Shown: positions 36,936 through 54,068 of the stretch, piece after piece
How the letters are laid out: every line of letters starts with the position of its first letter
Numbering within the stretch: position 1 is the stretch's first letter
DNA from: Entomortierella parvispora E1425
Lineage: Eukaryota > Fungi > Mortierellomycota
Direction: 5' to 3'
Assembly: GCA_020891255.1 (NCBI GenBank)
Contig: BQFW01000008.1
Coordinates: 558,001 to 622,000 of the forward strand
DNA length: 64,000 nucleotides
The notes under the pieces: generated by a model
The model's input: the letters and a program-made list of their open reading frames with translations, nothing else
Database searches by the model: none
What the model was told of the DNA's origin: nothing
Program-made: the position numbers and the translations under genes

Positions 36936-37008
36936 TGCTCTCTGGCAGGTTCGAACTGTCGACCTTCAGATTATGAGACTGACGCTCTGCCAACTGAGCT
37001 AAGAAAGC
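36936..37008 (-). tRNA. tRNA-Met(CAT), elongator, copy 1
   Basis: 73-nt cloverleaf GCTTTCT...AGAGAGCA with anticodon loop CTCATAA and T-loop TTCGAAC. G1-C72 and T54 mark it as elongator. T-runs follow downstream. Confidence 0.97.
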
Positions 37009-37028
37009 TTTCAGGGTTGAAGTAATTG

Positions 37029-37637
37029 TGTCGTGAATCAGACTGCTTTTATCCCCGCCAGCTCCGCGTCTGATCACATGACTTACGATCACCTGACCGC
37101 CGACACGCCTGATGAATGGACCCTTGTTGCGCGCCCTCATTGCACTTGTGCCGCGCGTCATCGTCGTTGACTATCACCAGGTCGACTACCCTCAACCGTG
37201 TATACTCACGAACGGAGCATTTCATGTTTCTCCGACATTAACCTACCAACCGTTGCCAATCAAAAGCTTGTCTCCACGCCGGTCGACCAAGCTCTTTGAA
37301 ACCTCGGACGTTAGGGCCCCTATTCCAGAATAGTCATAAGCCCTTCACTATTTATTTCCATAGTGTCAGCAGTATAGTCTCACTTCACTACCTTCAGTAT
37401 ATAAGTAGCTCTGTATCGAGACTTAGAACGGCATCCTTTCTTTGCCCTTCCATCTCGATTACAGGTAACCCTCTTGAGAACCCTATCAGTAGTAACACAC
37501 AGAATATCTTATTAAACATATCCTTTCTTTTGCCCTTCCATCTCGATTACAGTCAAGGTAGCTGACTGTGGTGCCCAGTGTAGAAGAACACGCTCGACAC
37601 ACCCTAAGGATCAGTCGTGATACCGAGAGTCACGACA
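37029..37637 (+). repeat. 5' LTR (609 bp)
   Basis: TG...CA with 8-bp terminal inverted repeat; TATATAAG at 37398-37405. By eye identical to the 3' LTR except one extra T in the run ending at 37531. Confidence 0.97.
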
Positions 37638-37641
37638 AATT

Positions 37642-37653
37642 TGGTAGCAAAGG
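37642..37653 (+). promoter_or_regulatory. Primer-binding site TGGTAGCAAAGG, probably for initiator tRNA-Met
   Basis: Begins 4 nt after the 5' LTR. TGGTAGC is complementary to the ...GCUACCA 3' end of eukaryotic initiator tRNA-Met. It does not match the adjacent elongator tRNA, which would require TGGTGCTCTC. Confidence 0.75.
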
Positions 37654-37752
37654 ACAGTAGCAGTCCTACCGCCACGCCCATCCAAAGGACAGTAGTAGTC
37701 CTACCGCCACGCCCATTCAAAGGACAGTAGTAGTCCTACCGCCACGCCATTC
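37649..37752 (+). repeat. 3 x 35-bp tandem repeat in the retrotransposon leader
   Basis: Units 37649-37683, 37684-37718, 37719-37752; consensus AAAGGACAGTAGTAGTCCTACCGCCACGCCCATTC. Confidence 0.95.
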
Positions 37753-37787
37753 AAGACGACCACCTTCCCTACCCACTTCCTTACATC

Positions 37788-38711
37788 ATGAATCAACATC
37801 AACACAACTTCGACGACGATATTGACGAGGAGCCCAACACGTCAAGCTATCACGCCGCCTCCACCTTCACCGTTCCCGAACCTGTGATCCACAATGATCG
37901 TCCCAAAAAGAACCTTTTGCCCTCGGATCATGAAACTTTCAATGGCACCTGCTCCCACCACGAGGCCCGAGCATGGTTGCTACAGACAGAGTTGATTGCA
38001 GACATCAGTGAGATTCCTAGACCGAAATGGCCCAGAGCCGCGATTGCCAAGCTTCGAGGTGACGCAAGAGTCTGGGGCCTGAATTACAACTCACTCCACA
38101 CCAATGCCACGTGGGACACTTTCTCAGCCGCCTTTTTAAGTCAGTTCAGCTCAGAAGACTTGGAAGAGACCCTTCGCAACGAACTCGATAGTGTTGTCTG
38201 GGAAAAGACAGACACCCCCAACACCTTCTTCCACCGTTTTCAGTTTGCTTTGATGCCTCTTGGTACCAATGTATCTGAAGGAGAAAAAGTACACGTCTTC
38301 AAGACCCGAAGTCCACAATTTTTGCGAAAATTTCTGATCGAACACCAAGTCAAAACCTGGCAACAAGTCCGCCAACACTGTGAAATCCGAACAGAGATGA
38401 GCACAAGCCTTGGTATCATTTCCCAATCCGCGCAGAACCGAATCAACCAAGCCAGACAAACGCCGCCGTCTCGCCCTTTTGTTGATCCATCACGCTTTGG
38501 TTCCCCAAGACTTTTCCAACACCACGCTGCTGCAACAGCCCCGCCCCCTCGTCCCTCTCACATTACTGGAAACCCCACTACTGGTTTTTCAACTGGAAAA
38601 CGCGTTAGTTTCTCTGGTCATCCGTTTTCACGCCCTCCAGATCGACGAGACAGCACCCAAAACCAAAAATCAAAGTCAAGGTCGTCGATCTTCGATGGAT
38701 ATGGACGTTGA
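37788..38711 (+). CDS. gag: Retrotransposon Gag, capsid part (frame ends before the nucleocapsid)
   Basis: Gag-type motifs AKLRGDARVW and TWDTFSAAFLSQF. The zinc knuckles lie in the +1 frame. Confidence 0.9.
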   Translation: MNQHQHNFDDDIDEEPNTSSYHAASTFTVPEPVIHNDRPKKNLLPSDHETFNGTCSHHEARAWLLQTELIADISEIPRPKWPRAAIAKLRGDARVWGLNYNSLHTNATWDTFSAAFLSQFSSEDLEETLRNELDSVVWEKTDTPNTFFHRFQFALMPLGTNVSEGEKVHVFKTRSPQFLRKFLIEHQVKTWQQVRQHCEIRTEMSTSLGIISQSAQNRINQARQTPPSRPFVDPSRFGSPRLFQHHAAATAPPPRPSHITGNPTTGFSTGKRVSFSGHPFSRPPDRRDSTQNQKSKSRSSIFDGYGR

Positions 38712-39126
38712 TGTGTTCAACATCGAGTGCCACAATTGCGGAGACAATCACAAGGCCGCAGAATGCCCCAAGCCGCAAACTTGTTATAACTGTGGACAGC
38801 GAGGACACTACAAACGCGACTGCCCTCAAGGAGGACAAAACCAAGGACGACCACAACGAAGGAATCGCCCAAACGTGAACATCAACATGACCCATATCGA
38901 TCCACAAGATTTCAAGCCCGAAACTTGCCCATTGATGGTCGTACCCCTCTACGTCGACGGTTGGCAATTCGACGCCCTTTTTGATAACGGCGCCAACGTC
39001 AACGTTATTTCTTCTCGTGCCCTCGAAGTTATCCGTGAAGAATCCCCGGAATCCATCCTCGATGAAAAACGAATCTATGAGCCGACCCCTGTACGAACAG
39101 CCCATGCAGGGAGACCTAGGTGCTAA
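38670..39126 (+). CDS. Middle retrotransposon frame: nucleocapsid (two CCHC knuckles) plus N-terminal half of the aspartic protease
   Basis: MDMDVD, CHNCGDNHKAAEC, CYNCGQRGHYKRDC, ALFDNGANVNVIS. In +1 frame relative to gag; the start coordinate is the inferred frame junction. Confidence 0.85.
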
Positions 39127-42100
39127 GGCACTAGGCGAAGTCATCCTTCGAGTTGTTATTGGAGAACACACCTGCCGTTTCACAGCCACGGTTGTTCCCG
39201 ACCTAGCTCACGATGTTTTTATTGGACTTCCATGGATGTTCCGCTACAAACCTCAAATCAATTGGGATCGCTACTCATTGACTTGGCAAGTCAATGGCCG
39301 AAAACACGAAGCCATCGCCAGATCTCAGCCCGCCAGTACCCTTCTGCAGAACGAACAGGTACCTGAACTTGCATATGTGCAGACGAACGCACAGCGGTTC
39401 TTACACACCATGGCCGCCGATGATACACAAGAAGCAGGAATCGTTTGGTTAATGAAAACCCACGTTCCAGAACACACCCGAGCAGAAGAGCTCATGACCA
39501 ACCCGGACCTGACAGTAGAACAGCAAGCTCAAATCGATGAGATAGTGAAGGAGTACCAGCAGGATGTATTCGCTCCACTCTCAGAGATGCCACCAGCCCG
39601 TCCCGGTTTCGATCACCAAATCCCCACTGGAGTAACAAGTCCTGTGGTCAAGAAGATATATAAGATGTCACCCCTCGAGCTCAAGACTCTCAAAGAACAG
39701 TTGGATGAGCTGTTACGGTTGGGGTACATCCAGCCCTCAACGTCGCCGTGGGCCGCACCAGTCCTGTTCGTCAAGAAGAAAGATGGAACATTGAGACTGT
39801 GTATCGACTATCGTGGACTCAACGCCGTCACGATCAAGAACAAGTATTTTCTCCCGCACACCGATGAATTTTTCGATCGCATGCGAGGAGCCCGTTATTT
39901 CAGCAAGTTGGATCTCCAGCAGGGATATCATCAACTTCAAGTTGCAGAAGAGGACAGACCCAAGACAGCGTTCTCTACCCGTTATGGACACTACGAGTAC
40001 TGTGTCATGGCTTTTGGTCTTACCAACGCGCCCGCGTCGTTTCAAGCCTTCATGAATACGATTTTCAGTAAAGAGTTGGATCAGTTCGTTGTTGTCTACC
40101 TCGATGACATCCTGATCTACTCCAAGACTTTCGAAGAACACTTGAAGCACATCCGAACAGTGCTATCAACGCTGCGAAAACATCACCTACATGCCAAGCA
40201 GAGCAAATGTGCGTTTGGATTATCCAGCATCACCTTCGTCGGACATGTGATATCCTACGATGGAATTCAAGTGGATCCAGCCAAGGTCGCAGTTGTCAAG
40301 AACTGGCCCACCCCAACCAACGTACAAGAGCTTCGTTCATTCATTGGATTTGTGAACTACCATCGCCGTCATATTTTCCACCATGCCGAAGTCACTGCTT
40401 GTCTTACAGACTTGTTGACCACTGGTCCAGGCCCAAACAAAGGAAAGTTGCGACCCGTGCCTACTTGGGGCCCAGTTCAACAAGCCGCTTTCGATGGAAT
40501 CAAAGAACTTCTAGCGACTACCCCTGTATTGTGCCTTGGACACCCCGATGAGCCGTACTATATGGAAACCGATGCATCCGACATTGCCACAGGAGGAGTC
40601 CTTTATCAGATGCACGAAGGCAAAAGACACCCAGTTGCCTATGAGTCACGAAAACTTAAGCCAGCCGAGAAGAACTACCCGGTCCATGAGAAGGAACTCC
40701 TCGCCATTGTTCACGCATGCAGAGCATGGCGCACGTTTATTCTTGGCGCCCCCGAAAACGTGGTCTACACTGACCATGCAAGTCTACGATTTTTGTTGAC
40801 CCAGCCACACCTGAGCCCGAGAATGACCCGTTGGGTTGAATTTTTGGCCCCCTACAACCTGTCGATCCAGTATAAGGCAGGAGCCACCAACATCGCTGCA
40901 GATGCGCTTTCCAGATTGCAAGTCAACAATGTGACAGCAGGACGTCACATCGACACTTGGGATTGGCCGTTGCTTGTCCCTGCATTTCTGGATGATGGTT
41001 CTTTTCCGCCCCATACCGATGGAGACACCAAGAAGAGAGTCCGCAAGGAGGCTCATAACTTCACGACTGATGACGACGAATTGCGCTACATGGTTGAAGG
41101 AAGAGCAGTTCCCTTCGTTCCGTTTGCAGAGCGCGCAGATCGTCTCATTGAGTTGCACACCGACATTGGACATCTTGGAGAGTCTGGAACGTTTGATTTG
41201 GCCAAGACTCGCATGTGGTGGCCCAGTCTTCGAGCAGATATCAAAGCAGTAGTACGTGAATGCAAGCCGTGTCAATTGGTCAAGCCCGGTGGTGACCGCT
41301 CTGTTGCACCGTTGCATCCATTGGCGCCAGCACGTCCGTTTGAGCGCTGGGGAATTGATTTTATTGGTCGCATGCCAGCCACCAAGAAAGGAAACCGTTG
41401 GATCATTACCGCAATCGACCATGCCACGAACTGGCCGATCGCAAGAGCCTTGCCAGAAGCAACCGCCGACGCCGTTGCTACTTTTCTCTATGAAGAGATC
41501 GTCTTACAGTTTGGCTGCCCTAGCGAGATCGTTAGCGACCGAGGAGCCAACTTCATGTCTGACGTTCTTCAACGCTATTTGGAGAAGCTGCACATCAAAC
41601 ACAAGGCTACGTCTGCTTACCATCCAAGGTCGAATGGAAAGTGTGAGCGTCTCAATGGTGTTATCGGACACATGTTGAGCAAGTATGTGGGTACACACAT
41701 CCACAGCTGGGATCAGTACCTGCACCAGAGTCTGTTCGCTTGTCGCGTACACATCTCTCAGCGAACCAAGGTCAGCCCATTTCAACTTGTTTATGGACTT
41801 GAACCCCGTTTGCCGCAAGATCCAGTACGCCCATTCTTGTTTGATTTTCAAGATCAAGACGATTTTGCAGAACATCGTCGCAAGACTTTTCGAGAAATCG
41901 ACGCCCTCCGAGAAAAGCACCTGCAGGCCCAGCAGACCGCCGCAGATGATATGGCCGCACACCATGAAGAGACACACACGGTCACCGATCATAAGTTCGC
42001 AGTTGGTGATTTTGTCCTGGTCAAGAACTTCGGCCGTACGAAGCTTCAACCCCATTTTTATGGCCCGTTGGAAGTGATCCGTATTACGCCCTTGTCGACT

Positions 42101-42670
42101 TATCAGCTCCGCTTGGGAGATGGTGAGTTGAAGACGGACTTAGTACACCAAGACCGTCTTAAGCGTGCTTATCCGCCAGATGAAGCATCTGCACGCCGTG
42201 CTTGGGTCACTAAGACAAAGCACACCATGGAGCAAGCCAACGACAACTCTGACGATGGTCTTCCAATTGAAAGCCGCACTGAGGAGGAACAGCGCGTGGA
42301 GGAGGCCCTCGCTCTTAGAACCGCCAATGAAGATTACCTTGCCCGTCGCGATCAACTTGGCACTTACGAACCGCCTATGATGGGTTCCGCCGCTGAAGCT
42401 GCCCGCGTGTACAGACAGGCACTTGCTGCTTCTGCCCCGAAGCCTCGTCGCCGTGGCCAACGTACTCGCGAACCCAGAGTCAATCAGTTGCAGGCAGGCC
42501 GAGGACGGCCTGAAGCCTGTGGGGGGAGTGTCGTGAATCAGACTGCTTTTATCCCCGCCAGCTCCGCGTCTGATCACATGACTTACGATCACCTGACCGC
42601 CGACACGCCTGATGAATGGACCCTTGTTGCGCGCCCTCATTGCACTTGTGCCGCGCGTCATCGTCGTTGA
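39112..42670 (+). CDS. pol: Retrotransposon Pol: protease C-half, RT, RNase H, integrase
   Basis: PR end VFIGLPWM; RT LCIDYRGLN, FSKLDL, YLDDILIYS; RH TDASD, KELLAI, TDH, ADALSR; IN H-X4-H...C-X2-C, WGIDF, SDRG, NGKCERLN and GPY/F. The start coordinate is the inferred frame junction; the ORF runs 142 nt into the 3' LTR. Confidence 0.95.
42521..42528 (+). promoter_or_regulatory. Polypurine tract GGGGGGAG
   Basis: Directly abuts the 3' LTR start at 42529. Confidence 0.85.
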
Positions 42671-43136
42671 CTATCACCAGGTCGACTACCCTCAACCGTG
42701 TATACTCACGAACGGAGCATTTCATGTTTCTCCGACATTAACCTACCAACCGTTGCCAATCAAAAGCTTGTCTCCACGCCGGTCGACCAAGCTCTTTGAA
42801 ACCTCGGACGTTAGGGCCCCTATTCCAGAATAGTCATAAGCCCTTCACTATTTATTTCCATAGTGTCAGCAGTATAGTCTCACTTCACTACCTTCAGTAT
42901 ATAAGTAGCTCTGTATCGAGACTTAGAACGGCATCCTTTCTTTGCCCTTCCATCTCGATTACAGGTAACCCTCTTGAGAACCCTATCAGTAGTAACACAC
43001 AGAATATCTTATTAAACATATCCTTTCTTTGCCCTTCCATCTCGATTACAGTCAAGGTAGCTGACTGTGGTGCCCAGTGTAGAAGAACACGCTCGACACA
43101 CCCTAAGGATCAGTCGTGATACCGAGAGTCACGACA
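42529..43136 (+). repeat. 3' LTR (608 bp)
   Basis: Direct repeat of 37029-37637. Confidence 0.97.
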
Positions 43137-43140
43137 ATTG

Positions 43141-43278
43141 GAAATCCGAACATCCCCATTCTCACTGGAAGCACCGAAATCACGTGAGCCGCGTCATGTC
43201 ACGTGAACATTACACGTGATTTCGGTGCTTCCAGTGAGAATGGGGATGTTCGGATTTCCAATTACTTCAACCCTGAAA
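43141..43278. repeat. Inverted-repeat core between the two tRNA-Met genes (arm to 43186, 26-bp spacer, arm from 43213)
   Basis: 43137-43186 is the exact reverse complement of 43213-43262. The remaining part of the left arm lies at 37009-37028, on the other side of the retrotransposon. Confidence 0.95.
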
Positions 43279-43351
43279 GCTTTCTTAGCTCAGTTGGCAG
43301 AGCGTCAGTCTCATAATCTGAAGGTCGACAGTTCGAACCTGCCAGAGAGCA
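43279..43351 (+). tRNA. tRNA-Met(CAT), elongator, copy 2
   Basis: Identical (73/73) to copy 1; T4 runs at 43357-43360 and 43364-43367. Confidence 0.97.
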
Positions 43352-53208: not shown

Positions 53209-54068
53209 CGTGTTTGGAGTCTGAGCGAAGAATTGATGGCTAGTCCGGAACTAGGCGATGGACAGATTGAATGGAAAGAGAGAGAGGGACAAGGAGGATT
53301 GGATGCAAAGGACAATGTGCAAGAAAAGAAGAAAGAAAGAAAGAAATAAAAAAAATGACGTCTTTGTGCCACTCTGGGCGTGGATTCTCCTCTTCTGCCT
53401 GGATCGTGCTCCCATGCTTTCTTTTCTTTCTTTTCTTCTTTCCTTGCCCTTCTGGCGGAGACAAAAGTGGTGCGGTGCAGGACAAGGGCCAAGCCACCCT
53501 CCGAGTCACGTGCATTTGTTCATATCACGTGAGAGGTCTTGGCTGTCACAGTGCAATCGCGAGCCATGTCGCCCCACAGGCGGTCGGTTCGCACATTCCC
53601 CTCGGTTGAGAGCGGTGCGGCTGCCGAAAAGAAGAGCGTCCCCTCCACATTTCTTTTCCCGCGTTCTTTTCTCCATGGCTTGGCTATCGTGGAGAGCGAG
53701 TGGAAGAAGAGGCGCTTCAACGGTGAGCGAGCCGAAAACTAGGGTGCTCTAATGGATCGGACCACGAGAGCGCCAACCTTCGTTCGATCCGTTCAACCTG
53801 ATCCGGTGCAACGTGGCTCCCAAGCCAAGCTCGGCTGGATGGCAATTGACATATGGCAGCACGCAGCTAAACGCAAAGGCCAGCTCTCAAAGTGATCAAA
53901 TATAAAGACGCACCTTGTTTCTTGCTCCCGCCCTGTTTTATTTTCGTTACACTCTTCTGATCAACCCATTTGCCCAAGGTCATTCGCTCTCTCCTCTCCA
54001 CTTCTATATCTCTTATACCCCTTCCTTTACACAATCGACATTCGACAGGCACGCATTTACATTCGAAC

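Follow-up and report, generated by a model that had tools for sequence, protein, structure and literature searches.

Structure of the tRNA-Met locus and its retrotransposon

Within the window, which is the whole 64,000-nucleotide stretch of Entomortierella parvispora DNA that was analysed, ARAGORN and Infernal identified two tRNA-Met(CAT) genes, an intact gene of the elongator type on the minus strand (36936–37008; Rfam RF00005, 60.3 bits) and a second gene on the plus strand (43279–43351). Both are held in a palindrome, the arms of which are 36917–37028/43259–43370 and 43136–43186/43213–43263. The upstream side of the left gene is occupied by a 6.1-kb LTR retrotransposon flanked by a 4-bp target site duplication (TSD), ATTG, read directly at 37025–37028 and 43137–43140. 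The left TSD copy covers positions −17 to −20 of the tRNA-Met, the 5′ LTR starts 21 bp upstream of it, and transcription of the element runs rightward, away from this gene. The mirror-image site in the other arm of the palindrome (CAAT, 43259–43262) is still empty, so the second tRNA-Met gene is the unoccupied partner. The TSD and LTR positions relative to the tRNA, the direction of transcription and the empty mirror site had been stated in the original prediction from the sequence alone, and they held. The upstream sequence that originally belonged to the left tRNA-Met, and that the right one shares, has been displaced to 43141–43278 and contains three CACGTG boxes (43181, 43200 and 43213).

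The LTRs, which were defined by repeat search, sequence and genomic matches (27 in total), begin with TG and end with CA. They lie on the plus strand at 37029–37637 (5′ LTR, 609 nt) and 42529–43136 (3′ LTR, 608 nt), differ only by an extra T at 37528, and have termini that form an 8-nt inverted repeat, TGTCGTGA/TCACGACA. The primer-binding site (PBS), TGGTAGCAAAGG (37642–37653, plus strand), is complementary to the 3′ end of initiator tRNA-Met including CCA; the initiator tRNA-Met gene ends with CCTTTGCTA and is present in five copies in the genome. No tRNA matched a 13-nt sequence complementary to the PBS region, and the 12-nt PBS fits initiator tRNA-Met, from which we infer that this tRNA primes the element. 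The leader contains tandem 35-nt units (37648–37760, plus strand; repeat search and alignment of copies), three in the window copy and four in some others. The polypurine tract, GGGGGGAG (42521–42528, plus strand), abuts the 3′ LTR and is the same at all 3′ LTR loci.

The coding region, all on the plus strand, comprises the capsid part of gag (Retrotrans_gag, 37788–38711; supported by Pfam, tblastn with the single-ORF relative P0002 and alignment of copies), a zf-CCHC nucleocapsid knuckle plus protease region read in a second frame (38660–39126; Pfam), and pol (39109–42670; Pfam, PDB search, alignment and an AlphaFold model). Pol contains reverse transcriptase (RT, ∼39770–40252), RNase H (∼40466–40855) and an integrase composed of a zinc domain (∼41120–41287), a core (∼41330–41626), an SH3-like C-terminal domain (∼42011–42169) and a clade-specific helical tail (∼42185–42433). 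The LTRs, tRNA PBS, polypurine tract and TSD, together with the Pfam order of gag with a CCHC knuckle followed by PR-RT-RNaseH-IN, identify the element as a Ty3/gypsy (Metaviridae) LTR retrotransposon. This was in agreement with the PDB search with pol, in which the top match was Ty3 Gag-Pol (7q5b, E = 3.6e-110); a pol search of a protein atlas returned only generic gypsy clusters without useful taxonomy.

In the window copy the gag frame is broken by an extra A at 38665, and a second change of frame occurs at an extra G at 39109. A programmed double frameshift for a three-frame gag/pol was considered and rejected, because the extra bases are missing from other assembly copies (5/8 for 38665 and 4/8 for 39109) and neither occurs in the short-read contigs from this sample. 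We attribute them to copy-specific lesions or to homopolymer errors of Nanopore sequencing, and the majority form of the family has a single gag-pol reading frame.

Every LTR locus of the family lies upstream of a tRNA gene

The E. parvispora genome comprises 38.9 Mb with 192 nuclear tRNA genes (PMC8759367). The 27 LTR matches found in it correspond to 15 insertion loci: eight uninterrupted full-length elements, two interrupted by another element, four solo or deleted LTRs and one fragment. At all 15, the U3 edge is located 8–36 bp (mostly 15–23 bp) upstream of a tRNA gene, with LTR starts at −8, −15 (four loci), −16 (three), −18 (two), −21 (three), −23 and −36, so that 13 of the loci fall within a window ∼15 nt wide. 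The targets are two genes each for tRNA-Met, -Asn, -Glu, -Leu and -Gly and one each for tRNA-Cys, -His, -Ser, -Lys and -Asp, and span 11 amino-acid specificities (12 anticodons). The tRNA 5′ end faces the U3 edge at every locus, i.e. the orientation is always divergent (15/15, two-sided binomial p = 6e-5). A 29-nt window in one orientation at 192 nuclear tRNA genes amounts to ∼7e-5 of the genome. Because all 15 loci share this narrow window, the targeted position is far beyond chance. Perfect 4-bp duplications, differing in sequence, are present at 11 of 14 loci and imperfect ones at the other three, and neither the duplicated 4-mers nor their immediate flanks have a shared consensus.

The original prediction, based on a single insertion, judged a chance origin of so precise a position unlikely, without taking it as proof of targeting, and would have been refuted if other copies and solo LTRs were not enriched within ∼40 bp upstream of Pol III genes. 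With the other copies counted, that refutation failed, and tRNA targeting is supported for the whole family. Pol III genes of other kinds, such as 5S and U6, yielded no family copy, and two LTR-less internal fragments (contig 6 at 920 kb and contig 13 at 2.17 Mb) lie away from tRNA genes. As a control, based on coordinates only, we used another gypsy family, abundant and with LTRs of 111 nt, which clusters in transposon islands. None of its 41 listed LTRs independently adjoins any of 63 listed tRNA genes, and the four nearest to tRNA genes sit inside a copy of the family described here (family 1); the same 63-gene list includes 5 of the 15 family-1 targets.

The insertions are young and independent

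The copies are 99.6–99.9% identical (differing by 0.13–0.43%), and the LTR pairs within a copy differ by 0–1 substitution. Three other strains (X5–X7) have the flanks but not the family. X5, the strain with contigs spanning the flank (flank identity ∼90%), carries an empty site that corresponds exactly to the C1 tRNA-Met insertion, with ACGA present only once. Short-read contigs from the same sample cover the element at ∼9× depth and confirm the tRNA-Cys junction. The insertions are independent transposition events rather than duplications, since they have unique duplications and flanks, private SNPs common to both LTRs of one copy, and the empty site in X5. The family is young, recently active and apparently still active.

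Insertion positions track promoter elements upstream of the tRNA genes

Insertions lie 7–35 nt (sd 6.8) from the mature tRNA end, whereas they are 41–52 nt (∼47 nt; sd 3.2) from the CACGTG box (r = 0.88, p = 1e-4). Of 13 target sites, 12 have a CACGTG box, and the two outliers, Cys at −8 and Asn at −36, become normal once measured from the box. A TATA-like box is located ∼23 nt from the insertion (22–29 nt at most sites), with the reservation that these calls are fuzzy and that two sites have only very weak matches. The insertion point therefore tracks the upstream elements better than it tracks the mature tRNA end, and host tRNA genes seem to depend on upstream TATA-like and CACGTG elements. 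That insertion takes place at the Pol III start site, as the original prediction stated, is inferred from this motif spacing only, without mapped transcription start sites.

The integrase lacks a chromodomain

Pfam detected no chromodomain in the pol of the window copy, and the nearest relatives, P0002–P0011, are also without PF00385. The element is not a chromovirus, as the chromodomain at the C-terminus of the integrase is absent. In the AlphaFold model the integrase tail forms four helices without a second β-barrel, and a Foldseek search with the C-terminal model matched only the SH3-like part, with no significant match for the tail. According to PDB bit scores, used as a rough substitute for a phylogeny with Ty3, Tj1, DGLT-A and Skipper, the integrase is no closer to that of Ty3 than to that of foamy virus. 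Ty3 was absent from the best 120 hits of the search that returned P0002–P0011. The lack of a vestigial chromodomain, the 4-bp duplication and the single orientation also exclude the element from the narrowly defined Ty3 lineage. As far as tested, these features support the claim of a new lineage, as does an orientation opposite to that of Tj1. Metagenome relatives (P0002 and P0005, 67–77% identity, and three further loci) lie on 1.6–6.9-kb contigs, the four longer of which (5.4–6.9 kb) are wrap-around assemblies of the element without host flanks; none of the five contigs has a tRNA gene, which, with flanks missing from four, is uninformative about targeting in sister species.

Proposed mechanism and alternative explanations

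The narrow window, the variety of tRNA genes, the single orientation, the 4-bp duplication, the independence and youth of the copies and their absence from other strains are shown. Our interpretation, which we consider likely (probability ∼0.8), is that the integrase directs cDNA to the initiation region of Pol III-transcribed tRNA genes; binding to TFIIIB or Pol III is inferred, without binding data. In this model the Pol III pre-initiation complex, bound upstream of the start site, would tether the intasome; the constant distance to the TATA-like and CACGTG boxes and the variable distance to the tRNA end suggest this. By analogy with yeast Ty3, which measures its insertion site from TFIIIB positioned between −15 and −32 relative to the start site, the tether on the host side would most likely be TFIIIB. 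On the element side, given the absence of a chromodomain, it would probably be the helical tail that follows the SH3-like domain. Since the integrase has neither a vestigial chromodomain nor Ty3-specific similarity, its contact with the Pol III machinery would have to differ in detail from that of Ty3.

An alternative in which an E-box-binding bHLH factor at CACGTG is the tether, with the integrase measuring ∼47 bp from it, draws support from the tight box-to-insertion distance, which accounts for both outliers, and from the near-universal presence of the boxes. However, no CACGTG occurs within 160 nt of the Leu site on contig 11, yet this site was used at the canonical −16; a CACGTG pair with 19-nt spacing (53507/53526) and no tRNA gene nearby has no insertion; many sites carry two or three boxes but use a single insertion position; and the TATA-like box is spaced equally well. 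We regard this explanation as unlikely. Direct reading of the target as DNA, either its sequence or a bendable TATA-like segment, without a protein tether, would fit the position of the TATA-like box at most sites, and target use by Ty3 is modulated by DNA bendability (PMC8632968, citing PMC6673722). It is opposed by the lack of consensus at the duplicated 4-mers and their flanks, by the two sites with very weak TATA-like matches, and by the fact that AT-rich TATA-like segments are common but used only when upstream of tRNA genes, which makes it very unlikely.

Also very unlikely in our view is untargeted or loosely targeted integration followed by selection that retains harmless insertions beside tRNA genes. 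The DNA upstream of tRNA genes is a well-known safe haven, and selection could in principle also produce the fixed orientation, as has been cautioned for Tj1 (PMC4600332). Nevertheless, the copies are extremely young, with identical or nearly identical LTR pairs, 13 of 15 fall within the ∼15-nt window, the other gypsy family is tolerated in intergenic DNA elsewhere, and 15 survivors of random integration would require ∼1e5 failed events per success. Lastly, the assembly is Nanopore-based (PMC8759367) and its repeats show single-base indel differences, which could point to segmental duplication or misassembly of a repeat beside tRNA genes. This artefact is all but excluded by the eleven specificities, each with unique flanks and duplication, by the junctions reproduced in short-read contigs and by the empty site in another strain.

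Comparison with known tRNA-targeting elements

Homing to tRNA genes is a textbook case of safe-site choice by transposons. Among the Pol III-targeting elements tabulated in a 2018 review, the fungal cases are from ascomycete yeasts only (PMC5911963). No tRNA-targeting element from Mucoromycota/Mortierellomycota was found in the full-text literature searched, consistent with the original prediction, which knew of no such element in this group; within that literature, this is the first tRNA-homing element seen in this early-diverging fungal group. Like Ty3 of Saccharomyces cerevisiae (Metaviridae), the Entomortierella element is of the Ty3/gypsy type, initiator tRNA-Met primed (inferred here) and inserted in a narrow window, a few bp wide for Ty3, at the upstream edge of tRNA genes, at a site set by an upstream-bound factor (TFIIIB for Ty3, PMC8632968; inferred here). 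In contrast to the Entomortierella element, Ty3 generates a 5-bp rather than 4-bp duplication, can insert in either orientation and requires TFIIIC for directionality (PMC8632968; PMC4600332), contacts Brf1 through a vestigial chromodomain in place of a helical tail, and uses a +1 frameshift instead of a single gag-pol frame. Similarity between the two integrases is only generic, and the host of the present element belongs to Mortierellomycota.

Tj1 of Schizosaccharomyces japonicus is a Ty3/gypsy element that inserts just upstream of tRNA start sites in one fixed orientation (PMC4600332), but this orientation is opposite to that of the Entomortierella element; Tj1 is also self-primed, rather than having a PBS that matches initiator tRNA-Met, generates 5-bp duplications, targets 5S genes as well, and its host tRNA genes are said to be without upstream TATA boxes. 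Dictyostelium DGLT-A, regarded as convergent with Ty3, is likewise Ty3/gypsy, with a single gag-pol frame and insertions 13–33 bp upstream of the mature tRNA (PMC5911963, PMC5006619), but it inserts in either orientation, no full-length active copies are left, and its host is amoebozoan. Beta/Tca8 of Candida albicans and Ylt1/Tyl3/Tyl6 of Yarrowia lipolytica are fungal Ty3/gypsy elements found 5–30 bp upstream of tRNA genes (PMC5911963), but in Saccharomycotina hosts. The Entomortierella family is likely an independent re-invention of the yeast Ty3 strategy. To our knowledge, there is no structural understanding of tRNA homing beyond yeast Ty3, and a fresh, apparently active example from a different phylum, with another integrase tail, duplication length and strict orientation, offers a natural comparison for learning which Pol III contacts are indispensable and how frequently the strategy arises. 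A precise, oriented integrase with ∼190 harmless genomic targets may also be of use in engineering oleaginous Mortierellaceae.

Promoter-like elements at the U3 edge

Insertion moves the TATA-like box and the CACGTG boxes away from the tRNA gene to which they belong. The U3-edge block of the window element (37045–37095), compared with 13 reconstructed native sites and the LTR of a second gypsy family, resembles the tRNA upstream sequence that was displaced. Within its first 70 nt, the LTR has a TATA-like ATAAAAG 25 nt from the edge (native mode 23), with GCTTTTAT at 37045–37052 corresponding to ATAAAAGC when read toward the tRNA, and two E-box-like motifs (CACATG, 37075–37080, and CACCTG, 37090–37095). 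These motifs fall near the positions of the displaced native elements. A bolder reading, which we offer tentatively and would at present rather doubt than accept, is that the U3 edge serves as a surrogate Pol III upstream promoter and, with chromodomain-free reach to Pol III, represents an independent, host-friendlier version of the Ty3 strategy. If so, the target tRNA gene would be kept working after insertion, only the divergent orientation would be seen, and an occupied site would remain open to a second insertion; this arrangement raises the new question of whether a transposon may bring along a substitute promoter for the gene next to it. The second gypsy family (47% RT identity) has the same U3 layout, with perfect CACGTG boxes, and faces a tRNA-Asp gene. 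Between this second-family element and the tRNA-Asp, a family-1 LTR has inserted at the canonical distance.

Family 1 is inserted in one orientation upstream of tRNA genes

The published assembly of strain E1425 comprises 38.7 Mb with 49.4% GC and 192 nuclear tRNA genes, and the paper describing it does not mention transposons (PMC8759367). A search of the genome with the LTR of family 1, the Ty3/gypsy family whose window copy adjoins a tRNA-Met(CAT) gene, gave 27 matches at 15 insertion loci. Ten of these hold full-length copies, eight of them uninterrupted and two broken by a member of another gypsy family; four have only a solo or internally deleted LTR, and one has a fragment of 113 nt. 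At every locus, the U3 edge of the 5′ or solo LTR is faced by a tRNA gene (Met, Asn, Glu, Leu, and Gly twice each; Cys, His, Ser, Lys, and Asp once each), and the divergent orientation is invariant (15/15, binomial p = 6e-5). Relative to the mature tRNA 5′ end, the LTR start is at −15 in four loci, −16 in three, −18 in two, −21 in three, and −8, −23, and −36 in one each. According to the original prediction, the proposed tRNA targeting would be refuted if other copies and solo LTRs were not enriched within about 40 bp upstream of Pol III genes. This refutation was run and failed decisively, since a comparable one-orientation window at the 192 tRNA genes covers only ∼7e-5 of the genome, yet all 15 loci lie there.

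Perfect 4-bp target site duplications were found at 11 of 14 loci, each with a different sequence. The tRNA-Gly locus on contig 1 is only an apparent exception, in which only the final two bases of the 3′ LTR remain, fused to the 5′ LTR with four internal bases, and the duplication (TCAA) is intact. No tRNA gene was found near two internal family-1 fragments without LTRs. One of the two is an isolated 1-kb piece of the C-terminal half of the integrase (L055:3054–3968 in local coordinates; contig 6, ∼920 kb), with 88% nucleotide identity to family 1 and a 304-codon frame that is still open. Close to the targeted tRNA-Lys gene, at a distance of ∼200 nt, is a gene for RNase MRP RNA (91 bits in Rfam; L018:868–1202, contig 8, ∼1.243 Mb).

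A third gypsy family served as a control. It is ∼5.07 kb long, has 111-nt LTRs in at least 41 copies, and apparently generates a 5-bp duplication. It is nested in two family-1 copies (L047:3164–8229 on contig 8 at ∼1.246 Mb, and contig 1 at 2.855–2.866 Mb) and is elsewhere concentrated in transposon islands rather than at tRNA genes. When its listed LTRs were compared with 63 listed tRNA genes, none was independently adjacent; the four nearest lie within a family-1 copy. The same list of tRNA genes includes five of the 15 family-1 targets.

Structure of the window copy

The window contains two identical tRNA-Met(CAT) genes in head-to-head arrangement, detected by both ARAGORN and Infernal (36936–37008, minus strand; 43279–43351, plus strand), with an LTR element of 6108 bp between them. 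The genes belong to a near-perfect palindrome (36917–37028/43136–43370) with a 26-nt center, and the element occupies only one arm. Its LTRs (37029–37637 and 42529–43136) have the termini TGTCGTGA...TCACGACA, differ only by one extra T, and are flanked by the 4-bp duplication ATTG (37025–37028 and 43137–43140). These coordinates place the start of the 5′ LTR at −21 of the left tRNA-Met gene, so the predicted position and direction away from the tRNA held exactly, as did the claim that the mirror site CAAT (43259–43262) in the other arm is empty.

Pfam domains follow the Ty3/gypsy order (Retrotrans_gag, zf-CCHC, RVT_1, RNase H, integrase zinc domain, and integrase core), and the top match among solved structures is Ty3 Gag-Pol (7q5b, E = 3.6e-110). 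The primer-binding site (PBS) TGGTAGCAAAGG (37642–37653) complements CCA and the nine bases before it in the host initiator tRNA-Met, whose gene is present in five copies in the genome, and the polypurine tract (42521–42528) directly abuts the 3′ LTR. A 35-nt tandem repeat (37648–37760) begins within the PBS and has three or four units depending on the family member. The family-1 copy on contig 7 carries three deletions, the same ones in both of its LTRs.

In the window copy, single extra bases at 38665 (A) and 39109 (G) distribute gag, NC-PR, and pol over three frames. We ruled out a programmed double frameshift. The assembly is Nanopore-based and Pilon-polished (PMC8759367), five of the assembly's eight uninterrupted copies lack the extra A and four lack the extra G, and short-read contigs of the same sample have neither base; the indels are therefore copy-specific lesions or homopolymer errors. 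A 1626-codon frame is present in two of the eight copies, and the related protein P0002 is encoded by a single gag-pol frame.

Upstream promoter elements and the insertion position

Reconstruction of 13 pre-insertion sites revealed one to three CACGTG boxes located 55–78 nt upstream of the tRNA in 12 of them; several unoccupied tRNA genes have such boxes as well. Across a wider set (window 43181–43218, the stretches L011, L017, L034, and L039 elsewhere in the genome, and the 12 reconstructed sites), the one to three boxes have a consensus of about TCACGTGA, a spacing of 16–21 nt, and a location 55–110 nt upstream of the tRNA genes, most of which also have a TATA-like box ∼35–45 nt upstream. 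Judged from sequence alone, the boxes look like an upstream Pol III element that is specific to this lineage.

Three candidate rulers for the insertion position can be weighed: the tRNA body, a factor that binds the E-box alone, and the upstream promoter as a whole. The distance between the LTR edge and the mature tRNA end has a standard deviation of 6.8 nt; that between the proximal CACGTG box and the LTR edge is 41–52 nt, with a standard deviation of 3.2 nt, and the positions of box and edge are correlated (r = 0.88, p = 1e-4). The outliers Cys (−8) and Asn (−36) fall within the normal range of box distances (48 and 43 nt, respectively). These observations would also fit an E-box factor acting alone, which is nonetheless improbable: one target lacks a CACGTG box and its insertion is still at −16, and a CACGTG pair with the layout found upstream of tRNA genes (53507–53531; boxes at 53507 and 53526, 19 nt apart) has no insertion. 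No tRNA or other Rfam RNA was found near this pair, so CACGTG boxes are not confined to tRNA genes. A TATA-like octamer lies 22–29 nt upstream of the LTR edge at most sites. Based on the tight box spacing, the resolved outliers, the use of a box-less target, and the empty tRNA-less pair, the ruler is the upstream promoter architecture rather than the tRNA body. Such a ruler would be predicted by tethering to TFIIIB, which is an inference made without start sites or protein-contact data; the Ty3 intasome is positioned by TFIIIB, which occupies −15 to −32 relative to the start site (PMC8632968).

The first 70 nt of the LTR, read towards the tRNA, contain ATAAAAG from 25 nt off the edge (the native mode is 23) and two TCAC-N-TGA motifs, CACATG (37075–37080) and CACCTG (37090–37095), roughly at the positions of the native CACGTG boxes. 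Neither ATAAAAG nor these motifs are present at the U5 end. A second, single-copy Ty3/gypsy element on contig 14 (∼2.004 Mb; L022:2104–2707 and L052:1105–6400) shares 47% RT identity and the initiator tRNA-Met PBS with family 1 and faces a tRNA-Asp gene in the same way as family-1 copies face their targets. The similarity of its LTR to that of family 1 is limited to the terminal TGTCGTGA, to GCTTTTAT in the same register, and to two CACGTG boxes, here perfect. A family-1 solo LTR was later inserted between this element and tRNA-Asp at the canonical distance, which means that this site received more than one insertion. These sequence features suggest, and do not prove, that the LTR edge may replace the displaced Pol III upstream elements, which, if true, could also account for the strict orientation.

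Comparison with known elements and the integrase tail

The tRNA-gene-associated LTR elements listed in a 2018 review are Ty3, Ty3p, Tj1, Beta/Tca8, Tyl3, Ylt1, Tyl6, DGLT-A, and Skipper-2, and its fungal entries are from ascomycete yeasts only (PMC5911963). Full-text literature searches combining Mortierella or Mucoromycota with tRNA-gene targeting returned nothing relevant; within that scope, the statement that no such element had been described in this group held. DGLT-A inserts in either orientation, whereas family 1 is only divergent. Tj1, the only wild-type element reported to have a fixed orientation, points in the opposite direction (PMC4600332). Family 1 behaves like Ty3, but it differs in duplication length, orientation, and chromodomain and therefore falls outside the Ty3 lineage sensu stricto. 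These differences support the predicted candidate new tRNA-targeting lineage, in the absence of a tree with named reference elements.

The family-1 integrase resembles foamy-virus integrase (88 bits) at least as much as Ty3 integrase (86 bits). Beyond its SH3-like C-terminal domain, it has a tail of ∼100 residues that is conserved only in the closest clade (P0001–P0011, 47–82% identity). The metagenomic relatives lack flanking sequence. The AlphaFold model of the tail has four helices and no second β-barrel, and a Foldseek search with the C-terminal model matched the SH3-like part alone. No chromodomain was detected by Pfam in the element or its close relatives. For these reasons, as judged from sequence and model, the contact that the vestigial chromodomain of Ty3 makes with Brf1 cannot be the same in family 1. 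The helical tail would be the obvious candidate for tethering the integrase, which is inferred in the absence of protein-contact data.

Independence and age of the insertions

The private SNPs of each family-1 copy are shared by its two LTRs, which differ from each other by 0–1 substitution; between copies, the divergence is 0.13–0.43%. Short-read contigs of the source sample cover the internal region at ∼nine-fold depth, and the tRNA-Cys junction is recovered in them. In three other runs labeled as the same species, tRNA-Met flank sequence was present but no element sequence at ≥85% identity. Only one of these strains, X5, had contigs over the wider flank, which is ∼90% identical; it reads through the contig 1 tRNA-Met site with a single ACGA, the exact empty site of that insertion. 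The near-identity of LTR pairs and copies, the absence from the three other runs, and the empty site in X5 indicate that family 1 is a recent arrival, or underwent a recent burst, in the E. parvispora E1425 lineage.
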